Counted from the stretch's first letter, positions 4,129 through 12,325 are shown. The stretch is DNA of 64,000 bases from Hyaloraphidium curvatum SAG 235-1 (GCA_025558095.1 JAIVFI010000037.1:434001-498000); one strand, 5' to 3'. The notes: generated from the sequence alone by a model not told the origin. Numbers and translations are program-made.

Positions 4129-4587
4129 TGCATGCCCGGAGGGGAGGAACGGGGAACTTGGTGGACGGGTGGCCAAGTGCGTATTGGTGATGTAGTGTCG
4201 TGTTGGAGTCGGCCGAATCGGCGGCCCGGGTAATCCTATTCTGATACCGATCCCGCTCTCTAGACTGTGTATTTCGTTCTGTGCCTGGCTCAGTGTCTCT
4301 CTTGATTGAGTGGCAGGCCGTCTAGGATAGCGGAGTGGAAGGAGTGTCTGGAAGAGCGATTCGGCGGCTGCAGAAGGTATCCGCTTTCCCGTCTAGTCCA
4401 GCCGCGATGCCCCGTGAGCGATACTATCTCTGGAAATCACTTCTGACCAGGGTATCGAGTCCCACAAATGGGGAAGCTGTCGGGGGCGTTGCGAGGGGAT
4501 CGGAGCGGAGGGCGCACCAGCCCGTCGCCGCAGTCAACGACGAAAAGTGTGACTTCGGAGGCCTCTCCACGGACCTTGAAAACAGCG

Positions 4588-6425
4588 ATGCGGCGCCGTA
4601 CTCCCGCGATCGGCGCAATCGCGCTCCTGGCTGCCGGGATCCTGCTCCCGGCTGCGTCTGCGCTCCCTGCCGAGCGCCAGGCGGACCCGGCCAGCCTCCC
4701 GGTTTCCAGCGAGGGCGCCTGCGGGGCCGCGGCGGGCTTCCGGTGCGCGGCCGGGTTCTGTTGCTCAGCAGGCGGGTTTTGTGGCACGGGCGGCACCTGG
4801 TGTGGTGCGGGATGTCAGCCGGCGTTCGGCACCTGCGGGGGCGCCGTCCTGACGGTGGTCTCGGCGACGCCGACCGGCCCCGCGCAGCCGACGGCCACCC
4901 TCCCGCCGCCGCAGAACCCGTCGGACGACCTCTTCGCTCCGCTGAGGAAAATTCTGGAGGTGCTGGGCATCCTCGGCATCTCGGTGCCGGCAAACCTCCC
5001 GCCGGCGCTGTCGGCCATTACTCCGGCCGCCACCACCGCCGTCGCGGCCGCCACCACCCCGGCGCGGCCGGTGCAGACGGTCGCCCCCGTCCCGCAGCCC
5101 GCGCTGCCAAAGAACCCGGCCACGCCGCTGGTCAGCTGGATCACCGAGGAGCTATGGGACCGGATCTTCCCCTACGCGGCGGCCTCGACCATCTGGTCCA
5201 CCGACGGCAGGCCGTTCTACACCCGCGAGGCGTTCCTGGCCGCCGTGGACTACATGCAGGCGCACCCCAACGCGTCCCTGCACGGCTTCGGCACCGCCTC
5301 GGACGACCTGACCAACCGCATCGAGGTGGCCGCCTTCCTGGCCTCGGCGGTGCAGGAAACTGGCGACCCGAGCCTGGTCATCCCCTACCCCTGGGCCTCC
5401 TCCACCCCGCCCGCTGCGAAGGAGGGACCCGAGTTCAACAGCCAGGGCGCCGGTGGCCTGCTCTCCCTGATGGAGGGCCTCGCGCAGCAGGTCATGCTGG
5501 TCGACACCCCCTCGTCGCCCGCACCGTTCGCGGGCGCGCTGTCCGTCGTCGCGCCCCTCACCGACCGCCAAGTTTCCCTCATCGGAACCGGCCAGCGCGC
5601 CATCGCCGTCACGGTCAACAGCCTGGCCAACTCCAACCAGGCGGCCTTTGGGCTCGGCGGGGGTACCAACACCGGCGTCATCTGGCAGCCCGGGCTGGCG
5701 GCCGTGTCGGACGACGGCACGCTGTACGGCGACGGGGTGCCGGCCGCGGGGGTGCTGCCGTCGGCGCAGGCCACGGGGAGCGACAGGAAGACGGCGTGCT
5801 ACGGTACCTACTGCCAGGTGATTCCTACTCGTGCTGGATGCCTTGAGATCCAAGCTGACATTCTTATTGTCTCCAGTATGGTGGAAGGGGCGTGCAGCAG
5901 CTCAGCTACAACTTCAACTACAACCCCTGCTCCCTCGACCTCTTCGGCGACCTGCGCCTCGTCCGCTACCCCAACCTCATCATCTCCGAGGACCGCACCA
6001 ACCACCACGGCCACCCCGCGACCTTCGGCTTCCCCGGCCCGAACCCCGGCGGCAACAACCAGCTCCCCGCCGACATCGCCTCGACGACCCCCGAGGCCCG
6101 CGTGCTCTCGTGGGCCACCTCGCTGTGGTTCTGGATGGCGGCGACCAGCGGGAGGGGGATGACGTCGCACGCGGCCATGATGAAGCCCTTCGGTGCGTAG
6201 CACTTTTCGCACCCGGACCGCTCACACGCGACTTACCATCGGGTCCCCGGCGCAGAATACGGCATCACCTCCGCAAACGTCATCGTCAACCGACAGGACG
6301 GCTGCAACGGCGGCTGGGCGGCGTCCAAGAACGCCTACTACCGCCGCATCTCGGCCATTATGGGGATCGACGCCGCCGTGACCGAGTCGTCGATCGTGTG
6401 CCCGGGGAAGTTGACGACGCGGTGA
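4588..6425 (+). CDS. Secreted CBM18 + GH19 chitinase-like protein, 2 introns
   Basis: Signal peptide; hevein/CBM18 CG..C..CCS..GFCG..CG.GCQ..FG.C; GH19 motifs FYTREAFLAA, EVAAFLASAVQETG, YGGRGVQQLSYNFNY, TSLWFWM, YGITSANVIVN. Confidence 0.85.
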
Positions 6426-6525: not shown

Positions 6526-9500
6526 CTACTTATCATAGAATTTCTTGGGCCACCCAGCAAATGCGGACTTGTCGTAGGCGCCGTCGGTCCACCCCGTACC
6601 CCTCATCATGCATCCCGAAATGAAGCATGCACCGCCGAACCTGGTGAAGCCCATGGCTTCAATTCGGGTTGCCAGGGCGGCGACCGCCGAGCTGTACCAG
6701 TTCATGACCTGCACACATGCGTAAGCCAGCTAGCTGGACGAAGCGGCGGAGAAGGCGAGTGCGATCTACCTGGCACTGGACCTGTCCCCCATTGTTGTTG
6801 CGCGACAGGCAGGCCGCCTTGCACATGTCGTACGTGGGCATGTTGCCGAGGTATTGCTTGACGCATTTACAGCCCCTGCAGACCTGGGCTTTGCCGAAAT
6901 CGCTGGGGCTCCAGAAATCTCCGAGGAAGTAGCTGATCCTGTACGGGTCACCGTCCGGCTTCGTGTCCCCGGCATTAATGCGGATCCAATCGTCCCTGTA
7001 GTTCTTGTATCCGGAAAAGAGCCCGTCCTGCGACTGGACCAAAAGACCCCACATGCCTGGATTCTCGGCCGTCCACATGAAGGCGGACCGCCCGTGGCAG
7101 TACGTTCTCCTGGGATGCGCATGAGCAAAGAACCAGCACCACAATCGCTGCGACCCACCATTCCGCAGCCGAAGACTGCGGTGATTCCCAAATGTATGCC
7201 CAGCAAGCCTGATCCGCCTCGCACAGGGCCCGGCAGTCGTCCTCGGACGCCTGCTTGCCGTACTGTCCCCGAACCGCTGAGCATCGACCGCACTAAAGGC
7301 TCCCGCGGCGAGGGAACCCACGTTGTACAATCCGTCCACCCCATCCCACTTAACCATGTCGTTGGGCTTTACCGCGCCGCCGTAGCGCATGTTCCACCCC
7401 GGCATCGGCGTCCACCCGTCGAACCCGAGGGCGGCGGCGATCGGCGGCCGGGTGGCCTCGTACTTTGCCTGCCAGCTTTCCACCGCCTTGCGCAGGTCGT
7501 CGGGCAGCAGCTGGTGCACCGGGACGAAGTTGCTCATGGCGACGACGGCCCAGTTGCCGACGCCCTGGTCCACGCTGCGCTTCCACTCCTCGAACGGGGA
7601 GGTGTCTCCCGAGGCCGAGATGCCGCCCGAGACCAGGGAGGTCTTGCCGCCGTACGCGGTCCAGGAGGACGACTGCGTGAAGCTCGAGGAGCCGCTGGAG
7701 GAGCTTTCGCTCTTGCCCCGGCCGGCGCTCACGCCGCCGCCCGCGTTGCCGAACTTGGCCTCGACTTCCACCTTGATCTGGCTCGAGGTTTCCTGCGCAC
7801 GGGAGCATCGCTTTAGGGTCTCACAAGGACGTTGAGTGACGCAACGGCTCTCACCCGCGAGTTGGAGGCAGCCTGGGTCGACAGCGCGAACGACGACGTG
7901 AGCCTCCCCCCGAGCACGATGCGCTTAGGATAGACGTGGCCCCAAGACTCCAGCATCCCGAAGTACATCTCGTACTTGCGTTCGTCCGACTCGATGGCAG
8001 CAGCGATCTTGCCCACCCCCGCGATAAAGTCCGGGTTGGTCCTAAACGGGAACCCGATCCTGTCCCTGTCGATCTCCACCGTCGCCCTCTGAAGCAAAAA
8101 GTTGGCCACGGCCCTCGTGGAGCTGCTCGAGGACTGCGAGCTGCTCTTCTGCTCCTTGCGCACGCCGACGCTGGCGCTGGCGAACCCGTAGCTTGCGCTG
8201 ACCTTGACGTCCGTGAAGCCGGCCTGCGCGTTGGCCTCTTCCTCCTCGGAAAAGGTGACCAGGACGCTGGCCGTGGACATCTTGCCGGGGTTGAAGTCCG
8301 GCACGGGGAAGGCGCCGGCCTTGATCGGGACGAACAGCGCGCGCGCGGGGCCGATCGTGGGGTTCGGAGGGCGCTTGGTCATCACATATCTGCCGTTCCG
8401 CGGATGAACGAGGCGGCGGCGAAGGGAGGCCCGGGGGATGCTCACCCGTTGAATAGCGCAACGCGGTCCACCACGCGCTTCCACTGCGCCGGGCACAGGT
8501 CCGCGGCATCCATGGGCTCGTCGACGCACTCCGCGGCGGGCTGCTTGGGCCTCCCGTCCGGGTCATCCTGCTCCTTGGGCGGCGCATTCTGCGCGGGCTC
8601 GGGTTCCGCCCGCGGGGGCGGCGCCAGCAGCTTCGCCCCGTACCACTCGGGCATGGGCACAGGGACCAGGTCCCCGATCCGCACGTCGTTGGCGCGGCGC
8701 CGATCTTGATCAAGGAGGACGATCCCGAGGAACCGCCCGTACTCCTTCTCCTCCAGCTGCACCTCGAAGCGCCACAGGTGCGGCGACGCCGCGGTGCCGG
8801 GCTGCCCGCCGCAGGAGCGGTACACCTCCTCGTCCGCGGGGCCGAGGGAAGCCCTAATCGTTCTGATCTGGCGCGGCTCCGTGCCCAGCGTGCTGGAGTA
8901 CGAGACCAGTGCGGCGGCGAGGTCCCCCGGCGGGGAGCCCTTGACGCAGCCCCATCCGAAAAAGGTGGCCCGTGCGACTTCCTGATCCGGGGCTGCCAAC
9001 GGGGCCGGGGTAATTGCATCGGTCTTGCCCTCGGCGTCGCCGGCCGGCGTGATTGCATTGCTCTGGGACGCCGGCGGCGTGATTGCTGCATTGCTCTGGG
9101 CCTGTTTGATCGGGTCCACGATCGCCTTTTGCAGGATTGCATCATCATCGCGGGGTCGAAGCAGGCGACGCGCACGTACCGTGCTGAGAAATTGGGCAGC
9201 CTTCTTCCAAACATCTTTGTAAAGCCTCCGCCCCAACCTTCTCCTCCCCGCCGACACGCTCGCCTTCTCGACCACCCCCATCGGCAGACCCCATGTGATG
9301 TCCAGCACCTCCCCCGACCCCTCCCCGCTGTACCCGTCCATCTTGAGCATCGCCCTCCTTCCCGACCTGACGGCCGCCAGATCGTTGAGCCTCGGATCCA
9401 GGACGAACGCGGAGAACGCCGCCCTGCCGTCCTTGCCGCCCGCCAGCAGCTTCCTCGACGCCTGGCCGTCCAGCGTGACGGAGAACCACGCCGCCGCGTC

Positions 9501-11357
9501 CCGGTTCCTGCACCGCCGGAGCATCTCCCCCTCGAACCCCGGCTGCGTCGCCGCCGAGGTCACCCCCGCCGCGAGCAGCGTGTCCGGGGCCGCGGACCGC
9601 TGCACCCACACCGTGACGGGGGACGAGGAGCCCCCCATGCAGGCCCATCCGCGGATGTTTATGGTGCCGGCCTCGTTGGAGGCGCCGGTGATGCGGCCGG
9701 AGAGGGAGGGGGCGAGCTGTTCGAGGTCGACGAGGGCGTCGATCGACTCGGAGGGCATGGTGGGGGGAGGCGAGCGCATGCAGCGGTACCATATGCGGAG
9801 GTAGGGAGGGGCGCCGGCGGGACATGCCGCGGGCGGATGGGTGCCGAGGAGGGAGGATGGGGTGCCGGAGATGCGGCAGGCGCGCTTGCGGTGGCAGGCG
9901 GCCTGCAGGGAGGAGAGAGCGTTCTTGTCGGTGCCGCACGGAACGGTGGTGTTTCCGGCGGCGGGGCAGAGGTGCGCTGTGGATGGGTGCCGCCCGAGCG
10001 TGGCGCGGTCGATCGAGAGGAGGAGGGAGGGGGAGGTGCACTCGAGCGAGATCTTGAAGCGGCCGCGGCGGTCGGGGCAGACGGTGGCCACGCGCACGTC
10101 GTCGCCCGCCGGGCGCTTGGGAGGCGATGCGGCGCAGGTGTAGGTCACGCCCAGGTAGGCGTGCGTGCCGCGGCAGGTGGGGCTCGAGGGAACCAGCTCG
10201 CGGATGCCTGCGCCGCAGGTCGGGGCGCCCCAGCAGGCCGCGCGCACGCGGACGCCGATGGTGTCGCGCTCGTCGGGGCCGATGACGCACGAGGGCTTGA
10301 GGGTGATGGGGATGGCCGCGAGGTTGCGAAGGGCCGAAAAATCGGCCGTCGAGGCTGACGTGGTGGATCCCTCGTCGTCGTCGTCTCCGCCATCTGGGTC
10401 ATCCACCTCATCCTCTCCTTCTTCTTCGTCCCCGCCTTCCTCGTTGTCGGCAGCATCCTCCTCTTCCTCGTCTTCTTCCGGAGGCGGCGGCGGCGGCGGA
10501 GGCCGGCGAGGTTTGGTCCGCTTGCCGAGACGGACTTTCCGCCTCTCGTCCGAATCATCATCGCCCTCCTCGTCATCGCCATCTTCCCCGGGCCCCTCGT
10601 CCTCGGGCGCCGCGCCGCCGCACTTGTCCGCCATCTCGCTGTTCCCGTACTCGATCCCCGTGACCACGATCACCCCCCTGCGGCAGCCCAGCGCGAGGTA
10701 CCCCGTGTCCGAGCACGTGACCGAGGCGAAGGCCTGCTCTTTCTTCCTGCCCGCCTGGGCAGCGGGAAAGACAAGGGAGGGCGAGAGCAGGACGGGCTTC
10801 CCGCTCGCGTCGTCGTCGTCGTCGTCCTCCCCGTCGTCGTCCGGCTCGTTCAGCCCGGCGAGCTCCTCCTTGGTGGGCACGTACGCGGCAAGCGGCCTGC
10901 GATCCGCCGCAGAGGGGCGTTGGGGAGCGTCGTCGAAATCCTCCCCGCCGTCCTCGGCCTCATCCGGCCCCTCCTCCTCCGAGTCCCCGCCGTCGCCGCC
11001 GCCACCAAACTGCTCTTCTTCCGGGAAGCCCCGAGACCCGCCTTGGGCCCTCCCCGCCGTGCCCGTCCCGCGGGACGCGGCCACCGCCCCGAACTCGAAG
11101 CCGCCCGCGTCGGCCCCCGCGCCGCGCCGCCCTCCCGCCCCCGCGGTCTTTTTCGGCGGCGGCTTCGAGGACACCGCCTTGTTGTTCGTGGCCTGCTTCG
11201 GCCCGCCCGAGGGCGCGCCCTTGGACACCGCGCCGCCGGACCGCGAACCGCCGCCGGCGGAGGCGCCGCCGCGCGGGCGGCCGCTGGGCCGGGCGGACAC
11301 CGCCAGGGAGAGCAGCAGCACCAAAACTAGCGCGAGCGTGGCCGCGGACGCGCGCAT
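6526..11357 (-). CDS. Large secreted multidomain protein: 2x SUEL (Gal/rhamnose) lectin, 2x 'GWAC' Ig-like domain, MACPF, Cys-rich C-terminus; several introns
   Basis: Signal peptide MRASAATLALVLVLLLSLAVSA; SUEL Cys patterns ending YLGVTYTC and YLRIWYRC; MACPF signature WGHVYPKRIVLGG and W..SV....NW.VV...FVPVHQLL; exons joined by GT-AG introns. Confidence 0.8.
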
Positions 11358-12325
11358 CGCGGATTCAGGCCGGGTCCGGAGGCGGCGGGCGGGCGTTCGA
11401 CGGGTGCTGATGGACGTTCCCGCCGATGGCTGATCAGCCGGGTAAGCCGTGCGGAGGCTCCGCGACCACACAGTGCGGCGCGGACAGCGTCCCGCGCGAG
11501 GCACTTAAATCAGCTTGTTGGGGCTCCGGCTTCGGCGGGGTGCCGGTATCGCATTGTCTAGATGGGACGTGGCAAAGCTGTCGATGCGTGACGGGTCGGG
11601 TCGAAAAGAGGTAGGCTCAAAAGAATCAAGGGCTACCGATTAGGCCCGGATGTCGCAGCGGTCATTCGAGCCGTATCGGAACCCGGGTCGGAGCACCGTG
11701 GACGGACGGCGACAAGTTCATGGGATGGGGAAACCGAATGCAGGTGGTGACCCCCATCCCCGCTCCGGCAGCGGAATGCGGCCCCAGGCATCGACCCTGC
11801 GATCTCTCGTGAACGATGGGCCAGCTGGGAACGATGCGCCCGACCGGTTTCATGGAACACATCCCGCAAGGACCGCGCAACGATTGCCGTGCGGCCCCGC
11901 GGGCGAGGGACGACCCAGGAAACTTGCCCCACCCAACCGGCCCTCACGGCGACCCGCATCATTCCCGGAGAGAGCAATGGCGACAACGCTGAGGAGTTCC
12001 ATGGAACCGCAATGCCCGACCATGAGCAAGCGTGCTGTGCGGGCCCAGGCGCGAGGGACCATCCGCGTATTTCCGCGCTCCCGTCCCCTTCCTCCACCTC
12101 CCCGACCCGCCAAACGCCGGCCCCTCGTCCGCGATTCCTCCGACGTCCCGCCTGTCCGCCGCGGCGCCCCGTTTCCCGGTGCGCCCCGCCGCGAGACCCC
12201 TTCACGTGCGCGACGTCACCGCGCCTGGCTGGCCTCGGAATTCCACCGTCGAACGGTCCCATCCGGGAACCCCCGCGGCTTCCGTCACGCACCGACGACA
12301 CCCCCGACATCGCTGCACGAAGAAG

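Follow-up and report, generated by a model that had tools for sequence, protein, structure and literature searches.

A predicted single-chain MACPF protein with SUEL, Ig-like and PAN modules and its seven-gene family in Hyaloraphidium curvatum

We analyzed a stretch of 64,000 nucleotides (nt) from the genome of Hyaloraphidium curvatum SAG 235-1 (GCA_025558095.1 JAIVFI010000037.1:434001-498000), which we take to be a monoblepharidomycete, an early-diverging fungus. This whole stretch is called the window, and coordinates are counted from its first letter. Its minus strand carries an intact gene of six exons, with coding capacity for 1514 amino acids (aa), that very likely encodes one fused secreted protein. 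The domain order is signal peptide, low-complexity region, a first SUEL domain split by an insert (SUEL-1), a second SUEL domain (SUEL-2), two related domains termed GWxC A and GWxC B, a Pro-rich linker, a MACPF domain and two PAN/apple-like modules (Table 1). As judged from its sequence, the protein is probably a secreted, self-contained, single-chain pore former of the pleurotolysin-B branch of the MACPF superfamily. It belongs to a family of seven genes in this genome, and the same order of domains recurs in at least one other organism. A preliminary description of the locus had proposed a glycan-guided pore-forming protein of this mosaic architecture; the architecture was borne out, each element it named lying on the minus strand at or close to its described position, but the glycan guidance was not.

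A MACPF domain of the pleurotolysin-B branch

Protein searches were run exon by exon, and deposited spliced proteins (P0001-P0004, P0027) were used wherever a spliced sequence was needed. The deposited protein of the locus, P0001, matched two Pfam models of the superfamily, MACPF_1 (PF22693) with 44.0 bits and MACPF (PF01823) with 35.5 bits, above the respective cut-offs of 27.5 and 21.5 bits. The exon-wise matches were collinear, covering profile positions 42-164 and then 230-265, and pleurotolysin B (PlyB) was matched in the PDB with an E value of 1.1e-11 over 247 residues. The region at ~7490-8450, previously described as a MACPF core, is by sequence a MACPF domain of the PlyB branch.

The MACPF signature, WGHVYPKRIVLGG, stands residue for residue opposite YGHVFRTKVHIGG of PlyB. 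It represents the PlyB-type variant (Y/W)GHV(F/Y)x7GG, without the T/S of the pattern (Y/W)-G-(T/S)-H-(F/Y)-x6-G-G. Both Ser/Gly-rich amphipathic stretches of the domain aligned with the hairpin-forming regions (TMH1 and TMH2) of PlyB, and the alternation of hydrophobic and polar residues is kept in VKVSASYGFASASVGV and in IKVEVEAKF. These sequence features point, on balance, to pore formation.

Outside the Hyaloraphidium family, the best MACPF relatives were bacterial or metagenomic, including P0005 (Bradyrhizobium brasilense WP_092089334.1; 31% identity, E 1.5e-21). Named fungal MACPF relatives (Serendipita, Cordyceps) scored below these, an order of scores that says nothing of origin. Note that one distant MACPF relative, P0090 (1103 aa), combines a caspase domain at its N-terminus (Peptidase_C14, 86 bits) with MACPF_1, an unusual fusion of protease and pore former.

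Gene structure, RNA contigs and deposited annotation

The Met at 11357 lies in a 1020-codon open frame (11504-8442, minus strand), with no stop in frame between 11357 and 8446, and smaller pieces of open reading frame (ORF) extend the protein across short introns. The DNA has a guanine-plus-cytosine (GC) content of ~70% (59-77% per 500 bases around the gene), and other frames of the same DNA also hold ORFs of 400-550 aa. Because GC-rich DNA carries long ORFs in other frames too, ORF length alone is weak evidence; the gene is supported by its domain matches and by conservation of the encoded protein among paralogs (tblastn E values of 1e-73 to 1e-77).

In one public sequencing run, the contigs that match this DNA are spliced, and the run was therefore taken to be RNA. 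A contig of 4149 nt spans 9093 to beyond 6300 and skips precisely all five introns (CT..AC joints on the plus strand), whereas two further contigs, 9335-10053 and 10288-11050, are unspliced. The spliced model is thus confirmed by RNA for five introns in a single contig, but not across the junction between the lectin and MACPF parts, which none of the listed contigs bridges.

Two intron candidates were rejected. A placement of intron 3 at 7372-7293 disagrees with the RNA and with the deposited model, both of which place this intron at 7321-7263. The stretch 9333-9094 (240 nt, in frame, GT..AG-like), whose boundaries are matched to within one base by the ends of two RNA contigs, was dismissed as a constitutive intron because its removal would delete the segment GYSGEGSGEVL..., which the paralogs retain and which forms a confident strand in the model. 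A further in-frame candidate of 54 nt (9179-9126, GTACGT..AAAAG) lies inside a gene-specific insert.

The sole database protein matching the locus is P0001 (DFJ74DRAFT_692904), a hypothetical protein of Hyaloraphidium curvatum with 589 aa. It starts at an internal Met (8654), runs from the end of exon 1 through exon 5 and consists only of the MACPF domain and the tail, lacking ~900 N-terminal residues including the signal peptide. The RNA contig reaches 440 nt upstream of this Met, into GWxC domain B, and contains no in-frame Met between 9093 and 8654, suggesting that the truncation is an artefact of a 5'-incomplete transcript assembly. P0001 also fails to splice the last intron (6769-6709), and its final ~36 residues are intron read-through. 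Exon 6 of the model presented here is homologous to the corresponding part of the paralogs P0002 (KAI9002494.1, from locus C42) and P0003. The model of P0002 is likewise short at its 5' end. When residues 430-970 of exon 1 were used in a word-indexed homology search, the locus's own deposited model alone was returned, low-complexity words having probably swamped the search. The public annotation of the locus is hereby corrected at both ends: its N-terminus is ~900 residues short and its C-terminus is wrong.

A seven-gene family in which the fusion is conserved

A genome search with the portion of exon 1 that follows the lectin domains revealed paralogs. The Pfam MACPF_1 model identified six loci besides that of the window, giving seven MACPF loci in the genome, and at each of them the MACPF match is preceded, within a few kilobases (kb) and on the same strand, by a SUEL match or lectin-like sequence. 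When the exons were used separately in tblastn searches, the lectin, GWxC, MACPF and PAN parts were collinear on the same strand at two C6 loci, at C42 and at C8:137000; at C8:774000 collinearity extended through MACPF. At the latter locus (L012), the lectin-like part and the MACPF domain lie in one uninterrupted ORF of 712 aa. The C16 locus has the same N-terminal part in an ORF, with a C-terminal SUEL domain in place of PAN. At the level of sequence, all seven MACPF genes of this genome share the N-terminal architecture of signal peptide, SUEL and GWxC.

Two paralogs are deposited as fused proteins, P0003 (KAI9027744.1, 1390 aa) with Pfam matches to SUEL, MACPF_1 and PAN_1, and P0027 (KAI9028037.1, 1098 aa; G000:C8, about 778000) with SUEL (below cut-off) and MACPF_1. 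The paralogs have diverged to 27-48% identity in the MACPF exons. A second subfamily is formed by the C16 locus (L015, G000:C16:171000-180999) and P0027. In L015 the acidic insert is located in SUEL-2, not SUEL-1, and the protein ends in a helical stretch and a C-terminal SUEL domain without PAN modules. Both PAN modules and, in addition, a C-terminal SUEL domain are present in P0002 and P0003. The two C6 members (L010 and L016; G000:C6, about 78000 and about 84000) are arranged in tandem on the same strand, ~6 kb apart.

The contig L014 (10.8 kb) belongs to an unrelated sample (SRR26194948) and has a GC content of 55.6%. No sequence in the Hyaloraphidium genome exceeds 56% identity to its MACPF, and L014 is therefore assigned to a different organism. 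It encodes, in this order, a signal-like start, a split SUEL, a SUEL, GWxC A, GWxC B, a poly-Pro stretch, the conserved Cys pair, an intron in the position known from the window's gene, MACPF and PAN. No Pfam match was obtained for the ORFs adjoining the L014 gene. A search for the same architecture was thus successful both at other MACPF loci of the genome and on L014. The view that the locus is a single mosaic gene, not two, is upheld by the seven loci, the paralog with a single ORF and the second organism, the absence of a bridging RNA contig notwithstanding.

In the literature searched, no paper joins Hyaloraphidium with MACPF proteins and no fusion of SUEL and MACPF is described. The domain combination, noted as unfamiliar in the preliminary description, is indeed absent from this literature, but it is not peculiar to the gene in the window, being shared by a seven-gene family with two paralogs deposited fused. 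The architecture is novel and conserved, and is already present, unremarked, in the deposited proteome as KAI9027744.1 and KAI9028037.1.

SUEL domains without the canonical sugar ligands

The N-terminus of the long form reads as a signal peptide, in agreement with the earlier description of a secreted protein, and signal-like N-termini are also found in the paralogs P0003 and P0027, in the L015 ORF and on L014. Note that this applies to long forms only; the short deposited form is without a signal peptide. Secretion also fits the even cysteine counts: the N-terminal part has 22, the tail 12 and the MACPF domain none.

The two SUEL-type domains, the first split by an acidic/poly-Pro insert, were both recovered as previously described. 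The Pfam SUEL_Lectin match of the window (47.7 bits, cut-off 31.4 bits) comes in two stretches, the second of which is the C-terminal half of SUEL-1. Half-domain matches equivalent to this half (profile positions 34-80) sit upstream of the full SUEL domain in the paralogs. P0003 and L014 have an insert of different sequence at the same position of SUEL-1, whereas that of P0027 is short, almost none, and its SUEL-1 is matched without interruption (Pfam SUEL positions 1-80, 28.6 bits). The family lectin profile matched the PDB rhamnose-binding lectins (RBLs) 5h4s, CSL2, CSL3 and latrophilin RBL with E values of 8e-24 (5h4s) to 2e-8. In contrast, a PDB search with SUEL-2 as a single sequence found nothing.

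Latrophilin RBL holds its sugar through Glu42, Tyr63, Gly117 and Lys120, and the substitutions E42D, E42Q or K120R, though conservative, abolish binding of both rhamnose and galactose (PMC2430599). At the ligand positions, SUEL-2 has CPD for CE, TLGR for YGR and PPYL for KYL, with the Pro at the Lys position being invariant in the family; SUEL-1 has CSD, YGN and HAYL. Because the needed Glu and Lys are missing from both SUEL domains, canonical glycan guidance is doubtful. The earlier proposal of lectin targeting through SUEL holds for the fold, not for the ligand residues, and from the sequence we consider canonical sugar guidance unlikely. The SUEL folds of this protein are predicted to belong to the class that does not bind rhamnose or galactose and may engage protein or other ligands instead. 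A caution follows for annotation in that the label 'SUEL lectin' is not equivalent to 'binds galactose/rhamnose'. The module is heavily used in Hyaloraphidium curvatum, with at least 28 SUEL_Lectin matches genome-wide, most of them outside MACPF genes.

GWxC domains, linkers and the PAN/apple-like tail

The two domains described earlier by their GWAC/GWGC motifs were confirmed as mutually related (hhalign probability 85%, E 5.9e-6). An AlphaFold2 model of GWxC A, built from 7 sequences, reached a pLDDT of 83.7 and a pTM of 0.79. Its closest structures were Ig-like domains of GH2 glycosidases and bacterial adhesins, with Z 8.0 at most, a level that is commonly reached, and Foldseek with GWxC A gave no match at E <= 0.001. 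Neither Pfam nor NCBIfam contained a match to the GWxC domains, and a profile search with GWxC A among proteins of about 90-280 aa found no relatives. Language-model neighbours were bacterial hypothetical proteins (score 0.90), which serve as a lead only. The suggestion that this domain type occurs mainly in bacterial surface or RHS proteins was not confirmed by these searches, which revealed a generic Ig-like fold. A model of both GWxC domains together (pLDDT 58) gave Fab-like and transglutaminase-like pairs with Foldseek and an Atlas TM of 0.31 to bacterial GT2/TarS-linker proteins; these matches were too weak and were not used.

None of the paralogs, nor L014, has a counterpart of the insert that separates GWxC A from GWxC B. 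The start of the main RNA contig (9093) falls within this insert, which, judged by its sequence, may serve as a linker for processing or regulation.

The Cys/Trp-rich tail was found to be PAN-like, as described. Exon 4 alone matched PAN_4 (PF14295) with 21.8 bits and PAN_1 (PF00024) with 15.6 bits; both scores are under the cut-offs (27 and 21.4 bits, respectively) because introns split the domain. The paralog P0002 scored 23.5 bits with PAN_1, over the cut-off. The top PDB profile matches of the tail were all apple/PAN domains, albeit weak (E 0.16-0.4), and the language-model neighbours of the paralog tail were all PAN clusters (score 0.87; again only a lead). No glycosylphosphatidylinositol (GPI) or transmembrane signal was seen by eye at the C-terminus, and the PlyB_C domain (PF18684) had no match in P0001 or exons 4-6 at E up to 0.1-10.

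Table 1. Coordinates of the MACPF gene and of the features of its predicted product in the window
Feature	Position	Strand	Basis or remark
Whole coding region, one six-exon gene	11357..6526	minus	1514 aa + stop; ORFs, sequence, RNA contig joints
Six exons	11357-8446, 8389-7855, 7792-7322, 7262-7159, 7109-6770, 6708-6526	minus	
Intron 1	8445-8390	minus	56 nt, GT..AG
Intron 2	7854-7793	minus	62 nt, GT..AG; interrupts the MACPF domain
Intron 3	7321-7263	minus	59 nt, GT..AG
Intron 4	7158-7110	minus	49 nt, GT..AG
Intron 5	6769-6709	minus	61 nt, GT..AG
Predicted signal peptide MRASAATLALVLVLLLSLAVSA, followed by RP	11357-11292	minus	aa 1-22; Leu-rich core, cleavage-type end AVSA before RP; read by eye
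Low-complexity region, G/A/D/P/S-rich	10743..11291	minus	aa 23-205; composition count; RNA contig 10288-11050 covers part of it gap-free
SUEL-1, N-terminal half (FASVTCSDTGYLALGC...IEYGN...DKCGG)	10730-10611	minus	Aligned with paralogs and L014
Insert within SUEL-1, acidic/poly-Pro/basic, D/E/G/P-rich	10302..10610	minus	~103 aa; composition and alignment
SUEL-1, C-terminal half (LKPSC...CRGTHAYLGVTYTC)	10301-10125	minus	Second Pfam SUEL stretch
SUEL-2, complete, 8 Cys	10091-9771	minus	Pfam SUEL_Lectin (PF02140), 47.7 bits
GWxC domain A, Ig-like/FN3-like beta-sandwich with conserved Cys pair	9722-9258	minus	AlphaFold2 model
Gene-specific insert/linker, basic helix-like stretch (RRRLGRRLYKDVWKKAAQFLSTVRARRLLRPR) and A/P/T-rich repeat	8997..9257	minus	~100 aa; low-confidence model helices
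GWxC domain B, second copy of the same beta-sandwich type	8996-8655	minus	Alignment with A, model beta strands; within the spliced RNA contig
Pro-rich linker and conserved Cys-pair segment (EC.D.P...DLC..QW...N)	8446..8654	minus	Leads into MACPF; kept in paralogs and L014; P0001 begins here
MACPF domain (Pfam envelope)	8250-7481	minus	Pfam and PlyB alignment
MACPF signature variant WGHVYPKRIVLGG	7944-7906	minus	Residue-for-residue opposite YGHVFRTKVHIGG of PlyB
PAN/apple-like module 1	7360..7070	minus	Spans introns 7321-7263 and 7158-7110
PAN/apple-like module 2 and C-terminus	6883..6529	minus	Spans intron 6769-6709; end of the PAN-like tail (7360-6529)

A tail-to-tail neighbour lies on the plus strand at 4468-6159. 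This unspliced ORF scored just below the cut-offs with Chitin_bind_1 (hevein-type, 25.4 bits) and Glyco_hydro_19 (23.3 bits). As the RNA contig of the MACPF gene continues past 6300 toward it, the 3' ends of the two genes may overlap.

Proposed mode of action and alternative explanations

Lectin-coupled pore formers are an established class that includes perivitellin-2, CEL-III and lectinolysin, and in the case of PlyB target recognition is supplied by an aegerolysin partner (PMC12031178). We propose that, after secretion, the disulfide-rich non-MACPF modules of the present protein would bind a surface ligand on another cell, doing the job of the separate aegerolysin. The MACPF domains would then oligomerise, and the two Ser/Gly-rich amphipathic regions would refold into a beta-barrel pore. 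The N-terminal SUEL/Ig array, set on long spacers of low complexity, may contribute to avidity or specificity. Several MACPF proteins have a C-terminal membrane-proximal domain, such as the C2 domain of perforin, APC-beta of TgPLP1 and the C-domain of PlyB. Since the PAN modules are located where these proteins carry such a domain, this analogy suggests that they are membrane-proximal binders and at least as good a candidate for target binding as the SUEL folds. The protein would most likely be directed against other members of the plankton, such as grazers, algae or microbial competitors, whether for attack or for defence. Such a repertoire is favoured over a housekeeping role because the seven diverged paralogs swap their C-terminal modules (PAN, PAN plus SUEL, or SUEL). 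A search of the 31.9-Mb assembly for aegerolysin (Pfam PF06355) was negative, as it was for the control genomes, which leaves the search unvalidated. The full proposal, i.e. a self-targeting single-chain weapon, evolved in this fungus and in at least one other related or similar organism, that operates without aegerolysin through repurposed SUEL, unclassified GWxC and PAN modules and has expanded here into a seven-gene, module-swapping repertoire of innate attack or defence, is put forward tentatively, as one possibility.

Several observations weigh against a fused, self-targeting pore former. The listed RNA contigs leave holes at 9094-9334, 10054-10287 and 11051-11367, so that none joins the lectin part to the MACPF part. 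Contig depth, admittedly a poor measure, declines from 366 to 75 to 10 toward the 5' end, and a shorter, abundant transcript starting internally is conceivable. Neither SUEL domain has the sugar-binding Glu that follows the first Cys or the sugar-binding Lys of KYL. Moreover, some MACPF proteins, such as astrotactins and BRINPs, are not known to form lytic pores. The RNA pattern bears most directly on an arrangement with two expression units, in which a short MACPF plus PAN product would be made from Met 8654 or from a transcript that begins around 9100; the lectin/GWxC part would then be a separate weak product or untranslated. The start of P0001 at 8654, the start of the main RNA contig at 9093, with its greater depth and the holes upstream, and the 5'-short deposited paralog of C42 (P0002) would all fit such an arrangement. 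However, the frame is open from 11357 to 8446, leaving the upstream product without a terminator, and RNA extends 440 nt upstream of 8654 through sequence devoid of an in-frame Met. In addition, the short form would have no signal peptide, and the fused order is kept in seven loci and a second organism, once in a single ORF. We therefore regard two units as very unlikely.

Two further explanations accept the fused protein and assign it a different function. Apicomplexan perforin-like proteins serve egress, and some fungal MACPF genes are linked to conidiation; by comparison, the protein might have a developmental role, with membranes or walls of the fungus itself as its target, e.g. in autospore release or cell separation. 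A deep RNA contig in a single run is compatible with a routine cellular role, the tail-to-tail neighbour looks wall-active (hevein plus GH19-like), and the SUEL folds are without ligands for foreign sugars. In contrast, seven diverged paralogs with swapped C-terminal modules and variable inserts resemble a diversifying recognition family, and we judge an own-membrane role to be rather unlikely. A non-lytic adhesion or matrix protein, in which the SUEL, Ig-like and PAN domains would make protein contacts and MACPF would serve as a poreless scaffold, appears more improbable still. The SUEL domains do resemble the RBL class that does not bind sugar (PMC2430599), bacterial adhesins are among the structures closest to the Ig-like domain, and the low-complexity spacers are long. 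But the signature and both hairpin regions align with those of PlyB, a proven pore former, with the alternation kept, and inspection of the C-terminus by eye revealed no transmembrane or GPI anchor. A secreted single-chain pore former thus remains the preferred reading of the gene.

Comparison with known systems

The individual modules have well-described counterparts. With the SUEL lectins CSL3 (2zx0), CSL2 (9vwi), 5h4s and latrophilin RBL (2jx9), the protein shares the fold and the eight-Cys framework. It differs from them in the replacement of Glu by Pro/Ser, of the Tyr of YGR by Leu (in SUEL-2) and of the Lys of KYL by Pro/Ala, as well as in the split of SUEL-1. The tail has the Cys-spaced core 'S..C...C.....C..(F/Y)(T/I)W' of PAN/apple domains, such as those of Toxoplasma MIC4 (apple domain 2ll3), factor XI (apple) and Eimeria MIC5, but in the window it stays below the Pfam cut-offs and reaches PDB E values of only 0.16-0.4. 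To our knowledge, a PAN domain C-terminal to MACPF is an arrangement not found in described proteins.

Fusion of MACPF_1 to a lectin fold is also seen in Agrobacterium/Rhizobium proteins with a Ricin-B lectin (WP_153515960.1) and in their metagenomic relatives. In contrast to the fungal protein, these are bacterial and uncharacterised, show about 27-30% identity and have a beta-trefoil lectin, located C-terminal to MACPF. The lectin of perivitellin-2 is of the tachylectin type. Perivitellin-2 of apple snails (PmPV2), a MACPF-lectin 'AB' toxin, likewise couples a MACPF unit to a delivery unit of lectin fold, and its lectin part has been proposed to engage surface ligands ahead of pore formation (PMC12031178). 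PmPV2 is, however, an animal protein of two disulfide-linked chains, whereas here a single fungal chain combines MACPF with SUEL domains lacking canonical sugar ligands and with Ig-like and PAN modules.

The nearest solved MACPF relative is PlyB of Pleurotus ostreatus (PDB 4oej, 4v2t; PMC4318580), which has the same signature variant and the same Pfam MACPF_1 domain. PlyB has ~520 residues, ends in PlyB_C and needs a separate lipid-binding aegerolysin (pleurotolysin A/ostreolysin A6). In the present protein, MACPF is placed within one secreted-type chain of ~1500 aa together with SUEL, Ig-like and PAN modules, and no match to PlyB_C was found. If targeting modules are indeed fused to a pore-forming domain here, the protein would be a natural single-chain counterpart to the partner-dependent PlyB. 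The family would then show how recognition and pore formation become coupled, offering seven natural, tractable variants with swapped recognition modules for comparison with the two-component system.

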